Positions 3,216 to 63,397 of a stretch of DNA of 64,000 bases are shown piece after piece (within the stretch, counting starts at the first letter, position 1; each line of letters begins with the position of its first letter). The stretch covers positions 124,001 to 188,000 of the IMG/VR virus record IMGVR_UViG_3300042465_005589; one strand, given 5' to 3'. The notes under the pieces are model-generated. The model did not search any database. It was not told where the DNA came from and saw only the letters and a program-made list of their open reading frames with translations. Both the position numbers and the translations under genes were made by a program.

Positions 3216-4502
3216 TTAATTACTTAAAGGTGCTTTAATTGTTGGATGTGATTGATAGTTCTCTAACGTAAAATCTCCTATATCATATGTAAATATCCCA
3301 CCACCAATTCTCATTTTGTTATTGGGGTTAATTGTTATATTTGGTAACTCATAAGGTTCTCTTGTTGTATAAGGAATTTTATACGAATCATAATATTCGC
3401 TTAATCCACCGCCAAACGGCATTAATTCATCAACCGCTTTATTATAATTTTCTTCACCCATCGCTTGTTTTAACAATTCTGTTCTTTCTTCGTGAGTATA
3501 TTTTCTTCCAATTTGTTCTTTAGCTGCATCAATATGATTTGAATATAAATGGACATCCCCTAAATTTCCAATCAACTGGTCAGGAACCATATTAACTTCT
3601 TTTGCAATTATCACCAATAACAATCCATATGAAGCAATGTTGAATGGTAAACCTAAGAATGTATCTACTGAACGTTGATTCCACATTAAAGAGATTGCTC
3701 TGGTTGGTATGTTTAATTCATCTAAAACATCAGATGTTATTCTTTTATCAGGAGTCCAATCAAATTTTCTTTCATTTTTTAAAATGAAAATTTCAAATCT
3801 TTGGTCGTAACTTAATTCTCTTGTATAAACTTGAAATCCATAATGACAAGGTGGAAGAACCATTTGGTCTAATTCTCCAACATTCCAAGCATTAACCATT
3901 AATCGTCTTGAGTCTGGGTTTGTTTTAAGGTCGTTGATTAGGTTTTGGATTTGGTCTATTCCATTTTTTAATCGAAATATTTCATTTACTGTGTAACTAC
4001 TTATAAAGTTTTCAATTGTATGCGGCACTAGAATATCTTTACCACCCCAATTTCTCCATTGCTTACCATAAATTGGACCTAACTCACCCCACTTATTAGC
4101 AAACTCATCATCTGTTTTGATTTTGTTAATGAAAATTGTTTGTGTCATAATTTCATCAGAACCAGTTTTAGTTCCGATAAATCCACCATTAACACTTGAA
4201 ATTGGAAACCAATCTGAATTAAATAAATAATTCTTATAAGCATCACCATTCCAAATATGACAATTATTATCAACCAAATACTTAATGTTGGTATCACCTC
4301 GAAGGAACCAAAGAAGTTCTGTGACGATTGATTTCCACGGCATCTTTTTGGTTGTAAGTAATGGGAATCCTTCTGACATTTTATGTCTGATTTGTCTTCC
4401 AAATACTGATATTGTCCCCGTCCCGGTTCTGTCTTTCTTTTCTATCCCGTTATCCAAGATATCTTGGAGTAAGTCTGTGTATGTTTTGTCTAATTTATTC
4501 AT
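3216..4502 (-). CDS. thyA: thymidylate synthase with insertions
   Basis: DRTGTGT, FPLLTTKK, ELLWFL, GPIYGKQWR, SRR, PPCHYGFQ, NQRSVDTFLGLPFNIASY, YQSHPTIKAPLSN. Confidence 0.97.
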   Translation of the reverse strand: MNKLDKTYTDLLQDILDNGIEKKDRTGTGTISVFGRQIRHKMSEGFPLLTTKKMPWKSIVTELLWFLRGDTNIKYLVDNNCHIWNGDAYKNYLFNSDWFPISSVNGGFIGTKTGSDEIMTQTIFINKIKTDDEFANKWGELGPIYGKQWRNWGGKDILVPHTIENFISSYTVNEIFRLKNGIDQIQNLINDLKTNPDSRRLMVNAWNVGELDQMVLPPCHYGFQVYTRELSYDQRFEIFILKNERKFDWTPDKRITSDVLDELNIPTRAISLMWNQRSVDTFLGLPFNIASYGLLLVIIAKEVNMVPDQLIGNLGDVHLYSNHIDAAKEQIGRKYTHEERTELLKQAMGEENYNKAVDELMPFGGGLSEYYDSYKIPYTTREPYELPNITINPNNKMRIGGGIFTYDIGDFTLENYQSHPTIKAPLSN

Positions 4503-4839: not shown

Positions 4840-5023
4840 CCAAATACTTGTTAAACATTTCTTTTGCTTTACCTAAATTTTCAACATCTTCATCAAAAAT
4901 AGTGTTAATAATAAATTCCGCTTCTTCTTCGGTACATTTTTCAATTATATCAATGTAAGTTTCTACTGAGACACCCAATCCCCGAGCAATTCCCAAATCT
5001 ATTAAGTCATATAATCCACTCAT
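4832..5023 (-). CDS. hypothetical protein
   Basis: 63-aa ORF in operon. Confidence 0.75.
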   Translation of the reverse strand: MSGLYDLIDLGIARGLGVSVETYIDIIEKCTEEEAEFIINTIFDEDVENLGKAKEMFNKYLDE

Positions 5024-5307
5024 TATTCATCTTTTTTATTTTGTTTTGATATGTAAAAATAAAGAGCTGTGATGGCATTACCCCACTCTTTATACAATTC
5101 ACTATTTGTGTTCATCTCATTATAGAATTCTTCTTTTGTTAGAAGTTCACCCGGATTAGGTGGTTGACAGGAATTGTCCTTACTATACGTTCCGTTTTGA
5201 AACATCGGATGAATCCACCGATTAGTCGCCATAGAATGTTCTACTTCATAACATTCATACACTTGGTCTATGGTCTCAACCATATTGGGGTCTATATTAT
5301 TCTCCAT
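5023..5307 (-). CDS. hypothetical protein
   Basis: Likely start MENNIDP at 5307. Confidence 0.7.
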   Translation of the reverse strand: MENNIDPNMVETIDQVYECYEVEHSMATNRWIHPMFQNGTYSKDNSCQPPNPGELLTKEEFYNEMNTNSELYKEWGNAITALYFYISKQNKKDE

Positions 5308-5803
5308 CCAATTCTTTTTCTCTACCTTCTTCAACTTTTTTATCAATATAATTTCTAAGGTCTTCCATAGATTGTAAGAACCCCAATCTCAACCGGTGGA
5401 ACTCCTCATCTTTGATTTCATCCCAATTGGAATAATTCTCAAAACAATAATCAAAACCTTCTTCATCCATTCTATATTGAACGGATTCCCAAAGTTCCAA
5501 ATCATCTTCCTCATCAATTTCTAAAGAAGTTAATCCCAAGAAACTTAATAATTTATCCGGTTTTGGTCTTGCGTTCTCGTGTTCATTTGGAATGGTGTAT
5601 GTTCTACCATAACTTGTTGTTAAAGATTTACCACCATTCATAATGTAGATGATACCTTTTGTATTGGTCATCTCAATTATCTCGTGTTGGTCATCCACAA
5701 TTACGTAATCAGAGACACCAATTTTGTATGCTCTGAATGTATCCCCTTCAAAATTTAGTAACCCTAAATGGGGTTTTCTGTTTTTATTCTCGTATTTCGC
5801 CAT
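5297..5803 (-). CDS. hypothetical protein
   Basis: 168-aa ORF, acidic C-terminal half. Confidence 0.75.
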   Translation of the reverse strand: MAKYENKNRKPHLGLLNFEGDTFRAYKIGVSDYVIVDDQHEIIEMTNTKGIIYIMNGGKSLTTSYGRTYTIPNEHENARPKPDKLLSFLGLTSLEIDEEDDLELWESVQYRMDEEGFDYCFENYSNWDEIKDEEFHRLRLGFLQSMEDLRNYIDKKVEEGREKELDGE

Positions 5804-5981
5804 TTGTGTGTTTTATTATTAATCTGTTTATTTTTCCTATTTTATTAAAACTATCCGCCCATTCTGCGTGGGTCTTTGGCTCACCAAAAACATCCAAATA
5901 TATTTCTTTGGACAAAGATAAGGTTTTAGAATAAGATTTCCAATTACTTTCTAATTTTTTATCCATTTGTGTGTAAATCAT
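5784..5981 (-). CDS. hypothetical protein
   Basis: MIYTQMDKKL...; the ATG coincides with the truncated end of the repeat array. Confidence 0.6.
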   Translation of the reverse strand: MIYTQMDKKLESNWKSYSKTLSLSKEIYLDVFGEPKTHAEWADSFNKIGKINRLIIKHTNGEIRE

Positions 5982-6693
5982 AGTGTTCCTCCACCTGTTC
6001 TTGTATACGCCAACCAAACTCCTGTATTGATGTTACACCCATTTTGTAGTGTTCCTCCACCTTAAATGGTAAATCATATTTAAAAAATAGTGTTGATGTT
6101 ACCCCCACTTTGTAGTGTTCCTCCACCGTGTGGTTCCAACATTTCCTGGATTCAATGGTTGTTGTTACCCCCACTTTGTAATGTTCCTCCACCCCATTGA
6201 TATAACCATACATACTGCCTGAAGTTGATATTACCCCCACTTTGTAGTGTTCCTCCACCTCCAAAGAAGCTTCTTTAATAAGTAATTCTGTTGATGTTAC
6301 CCCCACTTTGTAGTGTTCCTCCACCCAATGGAGATTGTGGTCCGCCTTGGCAATAGTTGATGTTACCCCCACTTTGTAGTGTTCCTCCACCCTTGGGGTA
6401 AGATAGTTGTTCTCAACCAACGTTGATGTTACCCCCACTTTGTAGTGTTCCTCCACCCATATCTTTGTGATGTCCTTAATTTGTTGGTTAGACATACTAA
6501 AATAGGATTCAAAAAACTTCCATATTTCTCTATAACTCACATAAACATACCCATTTTTTTTATTGTGTTGCAAGATACATCTCCCATCTTTCATATGAAA
6601 GATATAATCAGGGTATTCTTTCATAATGAATGGTTCCATAGGGTTAAAATTCGCATTCAACCACTTGATACAAAGTTTTTCTAATTTAGTCAT
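5959..6693 (-). CDS. repeat-spacer protein: ~80-aa family domain followed by 7 units of VEEHYKVGVTST + 10 variable residues
   Basis: Likely start MTKLEKL at 6693. The N-terminal domain resembles many paralogs in the window and the frame stays open through all spacers. Confidence 0.85.
   Translation of the reverse strand: MTKLEKLCIKWLNANFNPMEPFIMKEYPDYIFHMKDGRCILQHNKKNGYVYVSYREIWKFFESYFSMSNQQIKDITKIWVEEHYKVGVTSTLVENNYLTPRVEEHYKVGVTSTIAKADHNLHWVEEHYKVGVTSTELLIKEASLEVEEHYKVGVISTSGSMYGYINGVEEHYKVGVTTTIESRKCWNHTVEEHYKVGVTSTLFFKYDLPFKVEEHYKMGVTSIQEFGWRIQEQVEEHYDLHTNG
5981..6457 (+). repeat. 36-nt direct repeats with unique 30-nt spacers, period exactly 66 nt
   Basis: Consensus GTTGATGTTACCCCCACTTTGTAGTGTTCCTCCACC at 6026 (3 mismatches), 6092 (0), 6158 (2), 6224 (1), 6290 (0), 6356 (0), 6422 (0); 15-nt partial at 5981. 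Confidence 0.98.
5981..6457 (+). CRISPR. putative cas-less CRISPR-like mini-array embedded antisense in a CDS
   Basis: 36+30 geometry as in Bacteroidota II-C/VI-B arrays, GTTG start, 7 unrelated spacers, polarised decay. Against: no cas genes in window, a weak repeat hairpin, and full in-frame coding. Confidence 0.4.
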
Positions 6694-6877
6694 TACTCTC
6701 TTTATAAATTTTATAATCAAAATACCAGGGACTTTGTTCCCCCTCATTTTCGTTTTTAACAATTTCTTCGGCAGCAGCCTTAGCCTCCTCGTAACTATAA
6801 TACGATTCCATAAATTGACGAAAATCCACATCAATAAATGGTTCCCGGTGACTATTTCACCAAACTATAATATACAT
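6686..6877 (-). pseudogene. 63-codon ORF interrupted by an in-frame TGA at codon 7
   Basis: MYIIVW*NSHREPFIDVDFRQFMESYYSYEEAKAAAEEIVKNENEGKQSPWYFDYKIYKESND; overlaps both neighbours like a coupled gene. Confidence 0.5.
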
Positions 6878-7425
6878 AATTTTCTTTTTGGTGTTGGTTC
6901 CCAATATGGGTCATCAAAATCAGGGGGATTATTTGGAGTATACTCCATTCCGGTTTCATAGTTTTTTGCTAACCATAAATCATATCGTCTAATATATGAT
7001 AATTCCTCACAACAATTCTCACCCCACTTTTGGTAGAACTCATCATCAGTTAATAACATATGAACGAATTGGTTTTTACCCCATATTACGTCCGGGTCAG
7101 CATCCGGGTCAGGTGCATCCAAAAATTTATGAAATAACCTATCAATCGTATTCATCGGAATGATATCAGGATTCGGTTCACCACCTCGTAATTGATTTAG
7201 AATCTCTTGGTTAATTTCTTTTTGAACTTCTTTGAAAATTTCCGACGTTAACTCATCGTGTACTTTTTGTTTTTGAATTTCTCTCTCAAAAGTTTCCGGA
7301 GTTAATTGATGTAATGAATCCATTTTGAAATGTTGGGTCGGTATTGTGAAAACAGTGTAACCTTCCGTTGGATTACCTTTGATTGTAATTCCGTCCTTTA
7401 TGTATTCGTAAATTGTGTTATCCAT
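6865..7425 (-). CDS. hypothetical protein
   Basis: 186-aa ORF. Confidence 0.8.
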   Translation of the reverse strand: MDNTIYEYIKDGITIKGNPTEGYTVFTIPTQHFKMDSLHQLTPETFEREIQKQKVHDELTSEIFKEVQKEINQEILNQLRGGEPNPDIIPMNTIDRLFHKFLDAPDPDADPDVIWGKNQFVHMLLTDDEFYQKWGENCCEELSYIRRYDLWLAKNYETGMEYTPNNPPDFDDPYWEPTPKRKLCIL

Positions 7426-13096: not shown

Positions 13097-13513
13097 TTAT
13101 TTTAAAATTGTTTTTACACGAATGTGAAAATTATCTTCAAACCATTTTTTGAACGGTTCTTCCCATCTGTCACCAAAAATACTATCTAATTGATTTGATA
13201 AATGAGTATTCTCAAATTCAAGTATTGGGGAATCTTTAATATTTTTTTTTAATTGATGGCGGTCATACTCATGTCCTGTTGGTGGCAAAGCACTCTCATC
13301 TTCAATCCAATATTCTTTATCATACCATCTAAATAAAGTATTCTCGCCCCACCCTTCTTCATAATCACCTTCATAGAATTCCACAGCGTAATCAACCTCA
13401 TTACCCATATCGTCAGAACCAGGTGTCCAACCAATATTATTAACATCAAACATATTGTTAAGATGTTTAACGACTAAGTCATTAATTTTATTTTCAGTTA
13501 TAATAAATTTCAT
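13097..13513 (-). CDS. leader-bearing member of the expanded paralog family
   Basis: Start MKFIITENK at 13513; ends FKKWFEDNFHIRVKTI. Confidence 0.8.
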   Translation of the reverse strand: MKFIITENKINDLVVKHLNNMFDVNNIGWTPGSDDMGNEVDYAVEFYEGDYEEGWGENTLFRWYDKEYWIEDESALPPTGHEYDRHQLKKNIKDSPILEFENTHLSNQLDSIFGDRWEEPFKKWFEDNFHIRVKTILK

Positions 13514-13608
13514 ATCAATAAATATTTGATTTTCCATTATAAAACAAAAAATCACCAATTAAGGTGATTATTTTCCACTAAAACAGATATTTTAGTCATT
13601 ATTTTCCA

Positions 13609-22640: not shown

Positions 22641-22999
22641 TCCTCAACAAATTCCTCAATTAATTTATTCAAACTTATTCCCAACATATCAAGACCAAGT
22701 ATTTTTAAAAAATTATTTTCGCTAATTTTACGATTGTGAGATTCACTTAAAACTAAGGTACCATATTCTTTACCTTGAGGGTGAAGATAATAATTATTTC
22801 CATTAACCTTAAACAAATACATTGGACCATAATTATTAAGTAACCACCTAAACTCATCTCTACCATCAGTAAACAAGTTTTGACCTTTAGGACCTAATTC
22901 AATCCAATTTGTAATTATTTCAATATTGTCGGATAAGTTATAACCCAATATATTATTGATTAACCCTTTTAATCTGTTTTCTGTTATTATTATTTTCAT
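22637..22999 (-). CDS. leader-bearing protein, paralog of 27999-28373
   Basis: MKIIITENRL...NNILGYNLSDNIEIITN...LLNNYGPMYL. Confidence 0.8.
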   Translation of the reverse strand: MKIIITENRLKGLINNILGYNLSDNIEIITNWIELGPKGQNLFTDGRDEFRWLLNNYGPMYLFKVNGNNYYLHPQGKEYGTLVLSESHNRKISENNFLKILGLDMLGISLNKLIEEFVEE

Positions 23000-23340
23000 A
23001 ATTCTTCCTCCACTCTTTTCCACCACCAGGGGTTATCGTCTCTCGCCGAAACATTATTTGAATGTAAACCATATTCCTCCAATAACCATTTTTTTAATAT
23101 TGTTTGAACATCAGAAAAATCTAATCCAAATATTTTGGTTAACCCACTCCATATATTAAACACATCAACATACACATTAGTGTTTGTTAAATGATAGTCA
23201 ATCATTACCTTACCGTCTTTAACATAGAAAAGACGAGTTGGGTTGGATTCGCTTGTAACCGAAGGTAACCCTCCAAATTTATCGGTCAACCATTTTAGGA
23301 CCAATCTATGTAATCTATCTTCAGTAATTATCATTCTCAT
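22996..23340 (-). CDS. leader-bearing family domain with a single spacer-like tail
   Basis: Ends KKWLLEEYGLHSNNV-SARDDNPWWWKR-VEEEL. Confidence 0.8.
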   Translation of the reverse strand: MRMIITEDRLHRLVLKWLTDKFGGLPSVTSESNPTRLFYVKDGKVMIDYHLTNTNVYVDVFNIWSGLTKIFGLDFSDVQTILKKWLLEEYGLHSNNVSARDDNPWWWKRVEEEL

Positions 23341-23341
23341 A

Positions 23342-23659
23342 TTAATTTAATCTTCTAGTAAAAAAAGTTGATTTTAATGCTGACGGTTCATTAAATTTAA
23401 TTGAAACATATTCTTTACAGATATCCACCAAATCAGGTATAGACATCCCTAACATATTTTTAGCGGTATAAAAATCATCGTAGTCAAATCGTATTGATTC
23501 TTGTTTGGTATCATATTCAAAAGCGGTACGACCATTATCATCCATATATTCATATAGAACGTGAGGATACCCCATACGTATCGGTCGTCTCCCGTGTTTC
23601 TCATAACCCCTAAAGGTCATATCAAAATATTTAAAGATGAGTTCTTTCTTTCTGTTCAT
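23342..23659 (-). CDS. member of the expanded paralog family
   Basis: KKELIFKYFD...YMDDNGRTAFEYD. Confidence 0.75.
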   Translation of the reverse strand: MNRKKELIFKYFDMTFRGYEKHGRRPIRMGYPHVLYEYMDDNGRTAFEYDTKQESIRFDYDDFYTAKNMLGMSIPDLVDICKEYVSIKFNEPSALKSTFFTRRLN

Positions 23660-23670
23660 AATTAACTACT

Positions 23671-36503: not shown

Positions 36504-36837
36504 AATCCTCATTGTGATACCCCATCAAATATACTTCTTCGGGTTCTAACCTTATTCTATCTTTAAACCACCAAAAAATAACTCTTTGTAGTTCTTCCTC
36601 ACCAAATGAGAAAACCGATAGAGGTAACCAAAAATCCCTATAAACATATAATCCCCCATTATTCTCTAACCATTTCAATATAATTTTACCATCACTATCT
36701 TTGAATAACACTCGGTGATTACTAAACACTGAATTTACATTCATATCTTTATCTTCACGTGTTAATTTACTCAAGACATTATCTAATACCTTATAGGATA
36801 ATTGTCTTCTTTTATCTTCTGTAAGAAGTACTCTCAT
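36502..36837 (-). CDS. leader-bearing family-domain protein
   Basis: MRVLLTEDK; FKDSDGKII...FWWFKDRIRLEP. Confidence 0.8.
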   Translation of the reverse strand: MRVLLTEDKRRQLSYKVLDNVLSKLTREDKDMNVNSVFSNHRVLFKDSDGKIILKWLENNGGLYVYRDFWLPLSVFSFGEEELQRVIFWWFKDRIRLEPEEVYLMGYHNED

Positions 36838-37223
36838 ATATAATCATTAGTTATTTGAGCAACATTTAATCCTGTGTTTTCTTCAAACCATTCCTTAAAT
36901 ACCGGTAACCATCTATCACCAAATAAAGATGTTAGTTCTTGACCAACTCTCGGATATATAGATAGTAAAGGACATTTATAATTATGTAAGTGACCATAAC
37001 CAGCAAAGAATTCATCTTCCGGACCAGCATTTGCGTTACACCCATAGTAAATGTAGCTATCAGCATCATCTATAAAGAAAACAATATCACCCCACTTATC
37101 AACATCTCTTTGATATGAACCGTGTCTTGTATTTTCATTCCACCCATAATCCGGATAAAATTCTTTGTCTAAATACTTACGTATAATCTGATTAACTTTA
37201 TTTTCTGATATAATTACTTTCAT
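36834..37223 (-). CDS. leader-bearing family-domain protein
   Basis: MKVIISENK; FGDRWLPVFKEWFEENTGLNV. Confidence 0.8.
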   Translation of the reverse strand: MKVIISENKVNQIIRKYLDKEFYPDYGWNENTRHGSYQRDVDKWGDIVFFIDDADSYIYYGCNANAGPEDEFFAGYGHLHNYKCPLLSIYPRVGQELTSLFGDRWLPVFKEWFEENTGLNVAQITNDYI

Positions 37224-37831
37224 TCTTTTATAATTCTAAATCTCAATAATGGTTTACCATTAATTGTGATGTCACCTTTATCATTTTTTTCTATTGTCTT
37301 AACAATAACTTTTTTGTTTTTAAATTTACCCCCCATTAGAGTATCACCAACTTTAATATCTAACTTAATCATTTCACTTAATGTTAATTCTTCTTCATCA
37401 TGATGATTCCAAGTATCACCACCTGTTCCTTTGTATATTAATCTAACGGCATTCGCCGGAATATCCCCAAAGGTAACGATATGTTTAGTATCACCACCCT
37501 CAAAATGAGCGTCTTTATACCATTGCACACCAGCTCTTTCAGTATCAATCACCCATATGTCATCATCATAAGTTGAATCAAACATATCTTTCTTCTTTAA
37601 ACTATCTGTTGCAAACACAGCAGGAATACATTCTTCATCTTCACCATAATTACTATCGGCATAAATCAAATAACATTCCCCCAAAGATACCTGAAGACCT
37701 GTAGTTGAAATATTATCTCTATTTGATGGATTTGATGAATGAACAATAAATCTTCCGGGAGTAATCTCTTCCCCCTTCACTCGTTGTTCTTGTAGTTTTC
37801 TATATTGTGTTTCTGTTATAATTACTTTCAT
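37220..37831 (-). CDS. leader-bearing ADP-ribosyltransferase-fold-like protein
   Basis: FIVHSS...NISTTGL...PAVFAT...YDDDIWVIDT...GDIPANAVRLI; extra C-terminal module IKVGDTLMGGKFKNK. Confidence 0.55.
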   Translation of the reverse strand: MKVIITETQYRKLQEQRVKGEEITPGRFIVHSSNPSNRDNISTTGLQVSLGECYLIYADSNYGEDEECIPAVFATDSLKKKDMFDSTYDDDIWVIDTERAGVQWYKDAHFEGGDTKHIVTFGDIPANAVRLIYKGTGGDTWNHHDEEELTLSEMIKLDIKVGDTLMGGKFKNKKVIVKTIEKNDKGDITINGKPLLRFRIIKE

Positions 37832-38139
37832 TAGTCCCTTACCATTTTAACTTCCATACCCCAACTTGCACCATATGTATTAATATAAAGACCAAACATT
37901 GAATTAATATCATTTCTTATTTGTCTAGCCATATAACTTGGACTATGTGTCATCTTACCATCAATGAAGTCAATGTTTAGTATATTTCTAACAATATCAT
38001 TCTCACCTTTTTCATTTGGTTCACCGGCTAAACGAATTAACTTTGTTGTAAAAAACACCCTTTTAACCATAGGATATCCTTTAAGAATATATTTCTCAAT
38101 TGAACTATTTAACCTATTTTCTGTGATTATTACTTTCAT
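37831..38139 (-). CDS. leader-bearing hypothetical protein
   Basis: MKVIITENRL. Confidence 0.8.
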   Translation of the reverse strand: MKVIITENRLNSSIEKYILKGYPMVKRVFFTTKLIRLAGEPNEKGENDIVRNILNIDFIDGKMTHSPSYMARQIRNDINSMFGLYINTYGASWGMEVKMVRD

Positions 38140-38732
38140 TATGTACCTATATTATTCAATCGTGCGTTATAAACACTTCTGTAGTCAGATTTTAGTTTAT
38201 CATCAGGTAATTCTTCCAATTCACTTCTTCTTTTTAATGTTTGAGTATCTAAATAATCAATCATATATTCTCTACTCAACTTATCAGTATCAACCATCTC
38301 ATAACATTTACGAGGGTCATCAGTTTCCAAAGTTTCATAAATTTCAAATTCCGGATGACCGGTCTCTTGTCCAAATTTGGGTGTGTATCTATCATCATAC
38401 CATTCGGTTATCACATTATAAATAAATGTCTTTCTAACCTGTAACATTTTGGATAAAAACTCAATCTCCTCCGCATCAACATACAAATCACCTGTGAAAA
38501 ATTCATCAGTTTCATCATCAATATGATATCTGGCTTCAATAACTTTCTTACCACCTTTACACCACTCTTCAATAAAGATACCATAGTTATCTTCAGGTGG
38601 TGGAATAATTCTTTTTGAATTGGAGATTATACTCTCCATATGTTTAATAATAATACGTTCAAAGTTCGGATTAGATTTTGTAAATCTCTTCTGAACTTCC
38701 TCTCGTAATATTTTTCTAATTAAATTTTTCAT
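38139..38732 (-). CDS. leader-bearing hypothetical protein
   Basis: MKNLIRKILREE. Confidence 0.8.
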   Translation of the reverse strand: MKNLIRKILREEVQKRFTKSNPNFERIIIKHMESIISNSKRIIPPPEDNYGIFIEEWCKGGKKVIEARYHIDDETDEFFTGDLYVDAEEIEFLSKMLQVRKTFIYNVITEWYDDRYTPKFGQETGHPEFEIYETLETDDPRKCYEMVDTDKLSREYMIDYLDTQTLKRRSELEELPDDKLKSDYRSVYNARLNNIGT

Positions 38733-38733
38733 A

Positions 38734-39063
38734 TTAGTTTAATATATGTTTATTTACGTGATGAACTTTTTCAACCGGTAACTCAAAAAACTCCGAGAAC
38801 CATTTACCAACTAACCTTTTTACTTCAGGTGGAGTATAACTAAAATATGTAATTGGTTTTACCACATCTTCACAAATATATAACGTTTTATTTCTATCAC
38901 CATAAAGCATAATAACACCATCACCATTACGAAATTCGATTTTTTTTTGTTCTCCAACACTATCTGTCATATAACTAACATCTTCATACATATTAGAGAA
39001 GGCTTTATCTAATTCTTTTTTAGCTAATTGGTCTCTTCGGCTTTCTATTATCAAAATCTTCAT
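38734..39063 (-). CDS. leader-bearing family-domain protein
   Basis: Start MKILIIESR; GKWFSEFFELPVEKV. Confidence 0.8.
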   Translation of the reverse strand: MKILIIESRRDQLAKKELDKAFSNMYEDVSYMTDSVGEQKKIEFRNGDGVIMLYGDRNKTLYICEDVVKPITYFSYTPPEVKRLVGKWFSEFFELPVEKVHHVNKHILN

Positions 39064-39114
39064 ATTAATAAATATCATATAAATTAAAAACCCCCACGTT
39101 TGTGAGGGTTATTA

Positions 39115-39646: not shown

Positions 39647-40255
39647 TTAATCTTTTAATCGTTCACCTGTTTCTTTAACTTTGAATTGTGATAGGTTGTT
39701 TGTACCACTACCACCTTTAACTCCCTTAACGAATTTTACCACTCCGTTATTATATAACTTGTTTGGTGTATCAAAATACTCCCCATTGAAGACCAACATC
39801 CCCTTTGTTGTTAGTATCACTTCATAATCATTCCCCAAATAAGTTCTGATTAATACTGTATCTTTACCAAATCCATTTGCCAAGTCAATTAATCTTGTGT
39901 CCGGAGTTGATTGTAACGATTCTCTCGATTCTTTAATCTCATTGATGTCACACACAACTCCACCATACGTATTCATAAAGTTAATGAACTCACCGGTTAA
40001 TGTGTCCTCATCATCTTTAAACCACTCACCAAATACTCTACGACTATCCAATATGGAATGTAACATCTTCTCAACTTTATTCATATCATCAACCTTATAC
40101 ACAGCAATGATTGAATAACCTATTGGTGACTTGGTCCTATTAAGTTGATATTCTCTCGATACAGGGTCTTTGGACAATCCAATTTTCTTATCCGATAATG
40201 TTAAGGTTCTACCCAACACATCGTAGTATTGACCTAAATAAATGTAACCTTCCAT
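39647..40255 (-). CDS. T5orf172 (GIY-YIG-like) nuclease with possible C-terminal RAMA-like domain
   Basis: GYIYL...KIGLSKDPVSREYQL...EKMLHSILDSRRVFGEWF; C-terminal FNGEYFDTPN...GTNN. Confidence 0.75.
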   Translation of the reverse strand: MEGYIYLGQYYDVLGRTLTLSDKKIGLSKDPVSREYQLNRTKSPIGYSIIAVYKVDDMNKVEKMLHSILDSRRVFGEWFKDDEDTLTGEFINFMNTYGGVVCDINEIKESRESLQSTPDTRLIDLANGFGKDTVLIRTYLGNDYEVILTTKGMLVFNGEYFDTPNKLYNNGVVKFVKGVKGGSGTNNLSQFKVKETGERLKD

Positions 40256-45024: not shown

Positions 45025-45744
45025 TTATTTTTTGTGGAATTCAATAACTTCCCACACACCTTTTTTTGTCTCAACAAGAGCGGTACAATTTTCACACCAA
45101 TCCCCACTATTCATATAATTATCTTTTAACTCCGGTTGATGAATGTGTCCACATACGGCAACATCACATCCTTTTTTGTAAGCCAATAGTATTGCGTTAT
45201 GTTCAAAATCATTTATAAAGTTAACGGCTTTCTTAACACCATTCTTAATATCTTTAGAGATGGAATAATAAGGTAACCCTCTCATCTCACGATATTTGTT
45301 ATAAACTCTATTCATCCATAATGCTAAGTCATAACCTATTGAACCAATGTGAGCCAACCATTTTGCTTTGGTTATAAATACATCCAACACATCTCCGTGA
45401 AACACATACATCTTACGACCATCTATAGATGTGAAAGTATAATCCTCCGTGATTGTTAGATTGGATAATTGGAATGGAATAAAATCTTTTAGGAACTCAT
45501 CGTGATTTCCTCTGAGCCAAATAACATTCACACCTTTCTCACTCATCTTCATTATCTTTCTCAATACTTTGGTATGACTTTCCTTCCATTTCCCACCTCT
45601 TTTAAGAGCCCAACCATCTACGATATCACCATTTAAAATTAAGGTCTCTGTGGTGTTGTTTTCAAGAAATTCTACCACATCTTCAGCTCTACTTGATTTA
45701 GAACCCAAGTGAATGTCTGATAGAATTATTGTTTTATATTTCAT
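45025..45744 (-). CDS. metallophosphoesterase, LpxH/UDP-2,3-diacylglucosamine hydrolase-like
   Basis: SDIHLG, GDIVDGW, GNHD, HGD, GHIH, NSGDW. Confidence 0.9.
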   Translation of the reverse strand: MKYKTIILSDIHLGSKSSRAEDVVEFLENNTTETLILNGDIVDGWALKRGGKWKESHTKVLRKIMKMSEKGVNVIWLRGNHDEFLKDFIPFQLSNLTITEDYTFTSIDGRKMYVFHGDVLDVFITKAKWLAHIGSIGYDLALWMNRVYNKYREMRGLPYYSISKDIKNGVKKAVNFINDFEHNAILLAYKKGCDVAVCGHIHQPELKDNYMNSGDWCENCTALVETKKGVWEVIEFHKK

Positions 45745-46454
45745 TATGTCCAGTAATTATGTTCCTTTGTGAAGAACTCATCGTTATTTCTATTAAACCA
45801 AGATTTAATCATCATCTTAACCATATAGAATAAACCTTTGTTCTTAAATCGTCTTGATGTGGTATAAACAATTTTGTCCGCTACATAAAACTTATTTGGT
45901 TTTATCTTTGAACTTAAATGATAATCCTCAGCGAACTTGTCATCCGGATTAAATCCTCCCAATGAATTAAATTCCTCTAAATTAAATAACATAAATCCTC
46001 CAACCGCAAATGGTGTAGAGAATTTGGTTAAGTATTGGATAACATCAAATGATTTATACACATAATTGTAATCACCATCGTCAGTTCTCATTTTAGTTGT
46101 TGACAAATGATAATCATTTTCTTTCATAACTTCAACCATACAATTTAATAGGCAATATTGGTTGATGAATATGTCGGCATCCAAAAATAAAACATAAGGA
46201 GTTTTTATCTTTTTGGTTCCGTTGTTTCTGGCTTCGGCAGGAAATCCCCCTTTAACTATTTTTACATTGATATTGGTATGGTATGAACCAAGAATACATT
46301 TCTGTGTGAATCCATCGTCCGTTGAAGAATCGGCAACCATTACATTTACACCTTTAATATTATTTTGCAAGTTTAACAATCCTAAAGTTTTCTTTATGAT
46401 TAATCCCTCATTTTTACAGGGGATTACAATTGTTAAATCCTTACTTAAACTCAT
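45744..46454 (-). CDS. family 2 glycosyltransferase
   Basis: IVIPCKNE, VADSSTDD, ARNNG, FLDAD, GGFML, EDYHL. Confidence 0.9.
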   Translation of the reverse strand: MSLSKDLTIVIPCKNEGLIIKKTLGLLNLQNNIKGVNVMVADSSTDDGFTQKCILGSYHTNINVKIVKGGFPAEARNNGTKKIKTPYVLFLDADIFINQYCLLNCMVEVMKENDYHLSTTKMRTDDGDYNYVYKSFDVIQYLTKFSTPFAVGGFMLFNLEEFNSLGGFNPDDKFAEDYHLSSKIKPNKFYVADKIVYTTSRRFKNKGLFYMVKMMIKSWFNRNNDEFFTKEHNYWT

Positions 46455-62589: not shown

Positions 62590-62742
62590 ATGAAACCAAG
62601 AAAAAACGAAGAAGATAAGAAAATTAAATTCGCTATTAGTTTAGACCCAAAACTTTTTAAGAGAATGGATAATGAAATGATAAACAAATCAAGATTGATT
62701 GAAAATTTATTAAAAGAGTATTATGGAAAGAAAGATTTGTAA
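62590..62742 (+). CDS. ribbon-helix-helix-like small DNA-binding protein (50 aa)
   Basis: Hand-translated MKPRKNEEDKKIKFAISLDPKLFKRMDNEMINKSRLIENLLKEYYGKKDL. Confidence 0.7.
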   Translation: MKPRKNEEDKKIKFAISLDPKLFKRMDNEMINKSRLIENLLKEYYGKKDL

Positions 62743-63397
62743 AAAATGTGGTAAAGAAAAAAATGTTTGTGAATTTTATTCTGACAAAACAACCAAAGAC
62801 GGTAAAAGAGGTTCTTGCAAACTATGTATGTCTTTATACGACAAAAATTGGAAAATAAATAACCCAAATAAGGTATTAGAATTGTCTCGTAAATATAACT
62901 CTGAAAATAAAGAATTAGTAAATATAAAAACGAGAAAATGGCGAGAAAAAAATAAAACTTCAGAAATTATTAGAAATCGTGAGTGGAAAAAACTTAATAA
63001 TGAAAAAATAAAAGAATCAACAAAAAAATGGAGAGAAAAAAATAAAGAAAATATAAAAGAATATAAAAAAAATTATGAAAAATTAAAAATAAAAACAGAT
63101 ATATTATACAAATTAAAAAAAACATTACGAAATACAATATTACGATACCTTAAAAATAAAAGATTTACAACTACCGAAATTATTGGTTGTGATTATGATT
63201 CATTCAAGATTTATTTTGAATCATTATTTACCGAAGGTATGTGTTGGGACAAATTAGGTTCTGAAATCCATATTGACCACATTATTCCATTATCATCAGC
63301 AAAAACAGAAGATGAGTTATATAAATTAAATCATTATACTAATCTTCAACCATTATGGGCGAAAGATAATTTAATAAAAGGTAGTAAATTATTGTAA
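62723..63397 (+). CDS. HNH endonuclease (homing type) with N-terminal Zn ribbon
   Basis: CKKCGKEK...CKLC; HIDHIIPLSSA...NHYTNLQPLWAKDNLIKG. Confidence 0.88.
   Translation: MERKICKKCGKEKNVCEFYSDKTTKDGKRGSCKLCMSLYDKNWKINNPNKVLELSRKYNSENKELVNIKTRKWREKNKTSEIIRNREWKKLNNEKIKESTKKWREKNKENIKEYKKNYEKLKIKTDILYKLKKTLRNTILRYLKNKRFTTTEIIGCDYDSFKIYFESLFTEGMCWDKLGSEIHIDHIIPLSSAKTEDELYKLNHYTNLQPLWAKDNLIKGSKLL

Follow-up and report, generated by a model that had tools for sequence, protein, structure and literature searches.

CRISPR arrays are regarded as a non-coding memory, either of the cell or of a mobile element that has its own or a matching system. In 2018, Nivala, Shipman and Church reportedly described neo-CRISPR loci, which arose by off-target Cas1-Cas2 integration in Escherichia coli under over-expression, as chromosomal events. 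Natural arrays close to the locus presented here are those of Flavobacterium columnare. Its type II-C and VI-B arrays both have 36-bp repeats and spacers of about 30 bp, their repeats share the leader-distal ends, many of the new spacers are host-chromosomal, and the VI-B array, which has no cas1/cas2 of its own, is filled in trans by the II-C Cas1/2 (PMC8092290). Mobile elements also borrow adaptation machinery, as do plasmid type IV-A arrays from the host type I-E adaptation module (PMC11656645). The known virus-borne mini-arrays and RNA anti-CRISPRs have host-identical repeats and are non-coding; their spacers number one or two and are directed mostly against related viruses (PMC10651486; reviewed in PMC11656645). 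Here, we describe a repeat-spacer array inside a phage gene. It lies in a stretch of 64,000 nucleotides, hereafter the window, covering positions 124,001 to 188,000 of the IMG/VR virus record IMGVR_UViG_3300042465_005589, a contig of 318 kb. The open reading frame (ORF) that holds it occupies positions 5959 to 6693 of the window on the minus strand. With moderate confidence, we read the locus as a CRISPR-type array in a real phage gene, probably filled in trans by a type II-C Cas1-Cas2 of the host and kept open for translation by selection.

The array has a strict geometry. Seven repeats of 36 nt start, in plus-strand coordinates, at 6026, 6092, 6158, 6224, 6290, 6356 and 6422. Four of them are identical and the remainder differ by one to three mismatches, and zero such repeats are expected by chance, as estimated from shuffled sequences (n = 100). 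Together with an eighth copy at 5960-5995, which is partial and degenerate, they span positions 5960-6457 with a period of exactly 66 nt, leaving seven spacers of 30 nt. The GC content of the spacers ranges from 13 to 50%, and their mutual similarity is not above chance. A preliminary description of this DNA had listed seven repeats and a partial one, four of them identical, and seven dissimilar 30-nt spacers of uneven composition; this observation is confirmed. From the start of the gene to its end, the features are:

5959..6693, minus strand: array-bearing ORF, 244 amino acids from ATG, with an N-terminal alpha/beta domain, seven units of 12+10 residues and a terminal partial unit
6458..6693, minus strand: region coding for the N-terminal domain (amino acids 1-78), which also occupies the "leader" position of the array
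6499..6576, minus strand: candidate leader element (codons 40-65), containing an A-run and a T-run and least variable at synonymous sites
6422..6457, minus strand: repeat 1, leader-proximal, coding for the last part of helix 3 and for strand 5 in the domain
6392..6421, minus strand: spacer 1, in the newest position, no second copy in IMG/VR
6356..6391, minus strand: repeat 2
6326..6355, minus strand: spacer 2, a 30/30 copy of a segment of a Flavobacterium S9 peptidase gene, no second copy in IMG/VR
6290..6325, minus strand: repeat 3
6260..6289, minus strand: spacer 3, no second copy in IMG/VR
6224..6259, minus strand: repeat 4, one mismatch
6194..6223, minus strand: spacer 4, no second copy in IMG/VR
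6158..6193, minus strand: repeat 5, two mismatches
6128..6157, minus strand: spacer 5
6092..6127, minus strand: repeat 6
6062..6091, minus strand: spacer 6, peptide LFFKYDLPFK, also found in other arrays
6026..6061, minus strand: repeat 7, three mismatches
5996..6025, minus strand: spacer 7, peptide QEFGWR..., an old trailer spacer common to up to 41 arrays
5960..5995, minus strand: degenerate terminal repeat, with the stop codon after it

The base preceding each repeat is the wobble base of a variable codon. It is G in all units of the window, as had been noticed before for eight of eight units together with a repeat border that ignores codons, and it is also G in 88 of 89 distinct units across relatives. 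Because of this near-invariance at a variable codon, the repeat is defined at the DNA level.

The strongest indication for the origin of the spacers comes from spacer 2, the only one compared against bacterial genomes (one of one matched). Its 22-nt core was found exactly in 19 Bacteroidota genomes, every time in the same gene, with a chance expectation of about 0.07 matches, estimated from the collection size. The full spacer is present, 30/30, in three metagenome-assembled genomes (MAGs) of Flavobacterium, some of them from the same lake series as the phage contigs. The identity ends exactly at the repeat borders, which independently confirms the 36/30 phasing, and the flanks have no microhomology to the repeat. 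The protospacer lies inside a conserved gene for a secreted S9 peptidase of 633 residues and is oriented in the sense of the host mRNA. On this strand, the phage frame is shifted by one base and gives IAKADHNLHW in place of the host peptide YCQGGPQSPL. The protospacer search that the preliminary description had proposed was successful for this spacer. The peptidase gene itself (L061:5303-7204, with orthologs in L055-L073) is a conserved S9 member of the prolyl oligopeptidase family and occurs in Flavobacterium and Chitinophagaceae.

The composition of the other spacers points in a similar direction. Spacers of the array family have a GC content of 36.0 +/- 1.2%, compared with 36.3% in Flavobacterium loci and 31-32% in the phage; even 30-mers from the phage that pass a stop filter reach only 33.3%. 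Base use in the spacers is strand-symmetric, and a random model fits their codons as well as a phage codon model, leaving no phage codon signature. In a 4-mer likelihood test, the remaining 90 spacers fell between controls taken from the phage and from the host, with a host-like share of about 55 +/- 8%, and host-likeness showed no trend with array position. No protospacers were found in 440 kb of related phage loci, in INPHARED or in PLSDB, and five spacers (spacers 1-4 of the window and one of L039) had no virus match in IMG/VR beyond the arrays. For spacers 1-4, the IMG/VR scans also revealed no further copy within the 318-kb genome of the phage itself, which rules out silent donor cassettes for these four. 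To judge from the match of spacer 2 and from these compositions, the spacers are likely captured DNA, at least part of it from the host chromosome.

Spacer turnover was followed in a set in which proteins and loci were pooled, giving 109 distinct arrays, the spacers of which form 213 clusters, 149 of them singletons. At the domain-adjacent position 1, singletons made up 51% of the spacers, falling to 0-10% at positions 5-6, and the last spacer, at the trailer end, was common to up to 41 of the 109 arrays. Repeats are identical near the domain and decayed at the far end. A gain of units is visible between two loci, L020 being L021 plus two domain-side units, the added repeats of which are 36/36 identical to the first repeat of L021. 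Turnover is therefore CRISPR-like, with novelty on the leader side, shared old spacers and decayed terminal repeats.

Spacers are either point variants of each other or no closer than shuffled sequences, both at the protein and at the DNA level. The DNA-level comparison included shifted and inverted alignments, and derivation of spacers from each other by shift or inversion was ruled out. This bimodal similarity, without intermediates, also excludes gradual hypermutation and the variation of a diversity-generating retroelement (DGR). In DGRs, a template repeat copy and a reverse transcriptase give variants that differ at adenine positions only; here the spacers are unrelated, no second copy of spacers 1-4 is present in the 318-kb genome, and no reverse transcriptase was found among the large ORFs of the window. 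The comparison of orthologs suggested earlier reveals more than the same spacers diverging by point mutation. The old spacers that are retained differ by seven synonymous and five non-synonymous changes (ratio of non-synonymous to synonymous polymorphism, pN/pS, 0.18), so at least the old spacers matter as peptides.

Exchange between arrays takes place as well. In the homolog P0018, the trailer peptide QEFGWRLQKE is present twice in one array, pointing to recombination or duplication between units, and recombining units travel with the 3' half of their own repeat. Such events, together with the point mutations of old spacers under purifying selection, are what could be expected of an ordinary tandem-repeat protein, with a structural unit of 22 residues, halves homogenised by gene conversion, fast-evolving loops and cassettes shuffled between phages. 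We consider this explanation very improbable. Spacer 2 copies a host gene over 30/30 positions and is read in a frame other than that of the host, intermediate spacer similarities are missing, and the spacers are strand-symmetric and do not follow phage codon usage. Furthermore, arrays with a 65-nt period exist in paralogs, and the repeat region is modelled without confident structure. The host protospacer and the out-of-frame arrays, in particular, contradict an ordinary repeat protein. The view of the preliminary description, that the locus resembles neither a DGR, a shufflon nor ordinary tandem repeats, holds.

The repeat itself resembles those of known CRISPR systems. With ten Cas13b-type repeats (from PMC13187072) it shares 16-22 of 36 bases, compared with a mean maximum of 12.4 in a shuffled null (P(>=21) = 1.5e-4). 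In the leader-consistent orientation, the F. columnare VI-B repeat agrees with it in 11 of the last 13 nt and in four of the first five. Its ends, GGTGG...ACAAC, are similar to the GTTG...CAAC of type VI-B/II-C repeats, and its identity to known repeats is at most 61%. Type VI-B/II-C repeats also have an internal hairpin, and no conserved hairpin was found in the phage repeat RNA. Taken together, the geometry of 36/30, the polarity of the array, the spacer from the host and the likeness to Cas13b-type repeats indicate CRISPR adaptation itself. Contrary to how the preliminary description reads, the process is therefore probably not one outside known biology.

A leader might be hidden in the coding sequence. 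Within the domain-coding region, synonymous sites differ pairwise by 0.085 in the half proximal to the array and by 0.194 in the distal half (p = 9e-4). Such a halved variation is as expected if the array-proximal half also serves as a leader, for which codons 40-65 are the candidate element.

Compared with the VI-B arrays of F. columnare (PMC8092290), the phage array shares the 36-bp repeats, the spacers of about 30 bp, the addition at the leader end, the lack of adjacent adaptation genes, the host-chromosomal spacers and the leader-distal ACAAC repeat end. It differs in being phage-borne and in frame inside a coding gene, with coding sequence as the "leader", and in a repeat of only about 53-61% identity, without conserved hairpin and without cas13b or cas9 nearby. 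Like plasmid type IV-A arrays, it would be a mobile-element array extended in trans by host Cas1-Cas2; unlike it, those arrays are canonical, non-coding and placed beside their own effector genes. With neo-CRISPR loci it has in common the insertion at a leader-repeat-like site, the duplication of a pseudo-repeat and the seeding of a new array outside a CRISPR locus. In contrast to those loci, the sites belong to a phage gene family, recur in paralogs, have long been maintained and are kept open for translation.

Virus-borne mini-arrays, finally, are similar in that CRISPR repeats are found on a virus that has no cas genes and depends on the machinery of its host. In the phage array the repeats are diverged, up to seven or more spacers stand in frame, the one protospacer identified is in a host gene and none of five tested spacers matches a virus. 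These viral mini-arrays and repeat mimics (PMC10651486, PMC11656645) are nevertheless precedents for a further explanation, that of a working phage CRISPR array in which the RNA output matters, as CRISPR RNAs or as repeat decoys for the host Cas13b or Cas9, and the ORF is secondary. The significant similarity to Cas13b-type repeats, the leader-to-array orientation, which equals the ORF direction, and paralogous arrays that extend beyond the ORF stop would all fit. We regard it as improbable for several reasons. The repeat has no conserved hairpin, known viral mini-arrays have host-identical repeats, and the leader-proximal part of the phage repeat is absent from bacterial genomes. Because the protospacer of spacer 2 is sense-oriented, RNA from the ORF strand could not pair with the host mRNA, and 0/5 spacers match any virus in IMG/VR. 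Moreover, the first repeat belongs to a confidently folded domain, and the near absence of in-frame stops (1/79) and spacer lengths in multiples of three indicate that translation is selected, as described in the following.

After an N-terminal part of 78 residues, the ORF consists of units of 12 conserved residues, VEEHYK(V/M)GVT(S/T)T, each followed by ten arbitrary ones. Its frame has zero stops across the whole array. The other minus-strand frame that is open in the repeats is closed by stops in spacers 1, 3, 5 and 6, and the repeat-open frame of the plus strand is likewise closed within spacers. As 51% of random 30-mers from the phage genome pass an in-frame stop filter, seven in a row are expected in about 0.9% of cases, close to the rough 1% given in the preliminary description. 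Each canonical insertion keeps the frame automatically, because 36 + 30 = 66 nt are 22 codons.

Relatives provide a broader test of the open frame. A protein search returned 204 homologs, the lengths of which step by 22 residues (134, 156, 178, 200, 222, 244). At the DNA level, 13 viral and 27 metagenomic loci were retrieved, 39 of them usable; nothing but the N-terminal domain was used for retrieval, which kept the sample free of bias from ORF calling. These loci hold 30 distinct arrays with 81 distinct spacers, of which 71 are 30 nt long, four 27, four 33 and two 29. In-frame stops were present in 1 of 79 spacers, vs 34-54% in each of the other five frames, and the two 29-nt spacers (L037, L039) are the sole frameshifts. 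These two results argue that translation through the array is under selection in the ortholog group of the window, and from this evolutionary pattern we infer that the array is translated. Spacers of relatives that often carry stops, named earlier as the mark of an ordinary CRISPR array, are therefore not what the ortholog group contains.

One locus departs from this picture. L039:1743-2150 (contig Ga0181351_1001822) has five identical repeats and an ORF broken twice, once by a 29-nt spacer and once by a TAG made up of the last two bases of a spacer and the first G of a repeat. It appears to be a version of the same locus that is untranslated or has recently been inactivated.

The N-terminal part is a genuine protein. 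Its ratio of non-synonymous to synonymous substitution rates (dN/dS) is 0.09-0.23, and AlphaFold2 predicts, with a predicted local distance difference test score (pLDDT) of 93, a fold that starts with a helix, continues with four strands and two more helices, and ends with strand 5. In the first repeat, VEEHY closes helix 3, and strand 5 is made up of the residues that come next. The folded domain has 90 residues and many array-less paralogs. In the full-length AlphaFold2 model, the repeat region had no confident structure (pLDDT 21-36), which gives no basis for judging the solenoid that the preliminary description had proposed to model. Searches of Pfam, PHROGs and Rfam with the gene and the window gave nothing informative for the gene (a weak NUMOD4 hint, E = 0.039), the PDB held no informative match by sequence or by fold, and BFVD returned uncharacterised phage paralogs only. 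Each repeat contains GGAGG and ATG/GTG, and a role as internal ribosome-binding site and start was considered and not supported. Bacteroidota rarely use Shine-Dalgarno sites.

A profile search placed the N-terminal domain in a wide, unannotated phage family of about 100-130 residues with 335 representatives (E <= 0.001). The C-terminal motif of this family, W-V-E-E-x-Y-x-L-x-V, is what the repeat encodes. Other subfamilies (L046, L050, L051, L053) have their own arrays with their own repeat variants, and many single-domain members end with WRNITN, which is a second copy of the repeat read one base out of frame. Some paralogous arrays with identical repeats and spacers of 29 or 31 nt continue past the ORF stop. 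In L047, for example, the spacing is 65, 65, 65, and L074 and L086 are further out-of-frame cases. Overall, 44 distinct arrays contained 117 distinct spacers of 30 nt (91), 29 nt (12), 31 nt (2), 27 nt (6), 33 nt (4) and 24 nt (2). Because the frame is lost in paralogous arrays with spacers of 29 or 31 nt, the approximate 30-nt ruler acts on DNA. Frame filtering is confined to the ortholog group of the window. In L047 (L047:2348-2584 and L047:3880-5343), which belongs to another phage, four family paralogs stand in tandem, and the array with its strict 65-nt period from three 29-nt spacers has successive repeats in different frames.

The link of arrays to one protein family raises the question whether the phage does the work on its own. 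A phage-encoded integrase or nuclease could recognise the motif DNA, capture about 30 nt and duplicate the 36-nt site, as a dedicated diversifier of the family. Possible candidates are a Cas1-like enzyme of its own elsewhere in the 318-kb genome, or a homing-type endonuclease combined with repair. Several observations agree with this: the arrays are tied to one family over deeply diverged subfamilies, each with its own repeat variant, the DNA motif is retained with atypical GC-rich codons, the repeat is absent from bacterial genomes, and purifying selection acts on the peptides that the old spacers encode (pN/pS 0.18). GIY-YIG-like and HNH-like genes are also found in the window, and these homing-type nucleases could be relevant here. 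We nevertheless consider a phage-autonomous system unlikely. None of the large ORFs of the window was found to encode an integrase, a Cas1 or a reverse transcriptase, the 36/30 geometry, the polarity and the repeat ends match those of host-type II-C/VI-B arrays, and many paralogous arrays are out of frame, which is unexpected for a dedicated protein diversifier. The GIY-YIG-like gene (T5orf172/MUG113) lies at 39647-40255 on the minus strand, and the HNH-endonuclease-like gene, a weak assignment, at 62723-63397 on the plus strand.

Returning to adaptation by the host, the following course of events can be proposed. The small alpha/beta domain is multi-copy in these jumbo phages of about 300 kb, which infect freshwater Flavobacterium, and the repeat is the DNA for its C-terminal motif, VEEHYK-V/M-GVT-S/T-T. 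During infection, short pieces of DNA in the cell, mostly 30 nt and sometimes 29 or 31, and part of them from the host chromosome, would be inserted beside the domain-coding "leader", with duplication of the 36-nt repeat. The likeliest enzyme would be the host type II-C Cas1-Cas2 integrase, acting in trans on a repeat mimic. A canonical event would add 22 codons, and about half of the random inserts would be stop-free; inserts that carry stops or have 29 or 31 nt would be purged by selection in the ortholog group of the window. The product would be a protein in which the folded N-terminal domain precedes units of variable number, each of 12 conserved and 10 arbitrary residues. The core of this proposal, an insertion of 30-nt pieces at the DNA level with duplication of the 36-nt repeat and selection of in-frame products, had already been put forward in the preliminary description. 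It is now strongly supported by the host copy in spacer 2, the bimodal spacers, the novelty at one end, the 36/36 repeats of added units, the out-of-frame paralogous arrays with 29- and 31-nt spacers, and the 78 of 79 open spacers.

A number of points weigh against this scenario. The leader-proximal 23 nt of the repeat were found in 0 of 185,579 bacterial and archaeal genomes; host Cas1-Cas2, if acting, therefore uses a diverged mimic of about 53-61% identity and not a copy of a known host repeat. The acquisition motif of F. columnare (TTTA, five bases away from the protospacer) is not at that distance at the protospacer of spacer 2, so the check for a protospacer-adjacent motif (PAM) proposed earlier gave no support at the single protospacer. 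The host-derived fraction is drawn from one match and from composition statistics, and the case for translation is an evolutionary one. No cas gene or integrase was found among the ORFs of at least 200 amino acids in the window, which covers 64 kb of the 318-kb genome. Furthermore, the DNA motif with its GC-rich codons is conserved across deeply diverged paralogs, and this suggests a benefit that the proposed mechanism does not pin down.

Two benefits are conceivable, namely a decoy that diverts the adaptation machinery of the host, or a hypervariable protein tail. In a bolder version, the phages purposely keep CRISPR-repeat mimics in a multi-copy gene family so that host Cas1-Cas2 loads DNA into phage genes, either as a decoy or sink that draws adaptation off the arrays of the host, which would amount to an anti-CRISPR strategy against adaptation, or as a source of random 10-residue inserts. 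We put this forward tentatively, as a possibility that we rather doubt. The purpose of a "protein diversifier", which the preliminary description had assigned to the locus, is unproven, as the frame is kept automatically by insertions of 22 codons.

Repeats inside coding sequences are known from other contexts. In cyanobactin PatE multi-core precursors, recognition sequences with identical DNA flank the hypervariable cassettes. The phage protein is similar in its conserved N-terminal part and its variable number of hypervariable segments framed by invariant motifs. It differs from PatE in that no processing or modifying enzymes are nearby, the N-terminal part is a folded 90-residue domain with array-less paralogs, and the segments are captured foreign DNA. 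The origin iterons of phage lambda are a repeat array inside gene O that serves as protein-binding sites, with spacers that show no turnover. Both loci have DNA-level repeats embedded in a coding sequence and read in frame, and unlike the iterons, the phage array replaces its spacers wholesale, at least one of them coming from host DNA. Our literature search for translated or in-frame repeat-spacer arrays found nothing comparable, and a 2024 review of CRISPR in mobile elements leaves coding arrays unmentioned. Of viral mini-arrays and repeat mimics, plasmid type IV-A arrays and neo-CRISPR loci, none is known to be built into a gene in its reading frame, to have a protein motif for its repeat, or to be kept open for translation.

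These findings suggest that a phage gene can be subject to spacer capture of the CRISPR type, or can exploit it. If phage genes are written into by host Cas1-Cas2, natural adaptation substrates would exist outside CRISPR loci, with a bearing on how arrays are born. Phages may then turn the adaptation step to their own use or mislead it with a decoy, few counter-measures against this step being known, and random captured DNA would be turned into expressed peptide diversity. Either as a decoy or as a generator of protein diversity, this would put CRISPR adaptation to a previously undescribed use. The locus also directly assigns a host, Flavobacterium, to a clade of uncultured 300-kb freshwater phages. 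Such loci will be missed both by CRISPR finders that mask coding regions and by gene callers that ignore arrays.

Outside the array-bearing gene, the window has about 32% GC and carries genes for thymidylate synthase, ClpP and other phage-type proteins. At least five further paralogs of the domain, partly in tandem, without arrays and with an MK-I/V-IITE... start, are present:

22999..23346, minus strand: array-less family paralog
23345-23665, 36505-36843, 36837-37235 and 38737-39108, minus strand: weaker family paralogs
13100-13558 and 37834-38151, minus strand: weakest family candidates, weak match

The end of the first of these paralogs, at about 22999-23040, holds a partial in-frame second copy of the motif, RVEEEL, followed by the stop. 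The GGAGG of this copy is located 7 nt upstream of the start codon (ATG) of the paralog that follows, and start and stop overlap (ATGA). The motif DNA may act there as a ribosome-binding site too. A pair of glycosyltransferase-2 and metallophosphatase genes at 45025-46454 (minus strand) is syntenic with L053:3001-4969, where the pair is located directly downstream of P0144, an array-bearing family member of a distant phage. The thymidylate synthase (3216-4502, minus strand) has 428 amino acids, which is far longer than usual, seemingly with insertions. A short motif, DDEF..KWGE, recurs in this enzyme and in the small neighbouring ORFs at 5023-5346 and 6865-7425.

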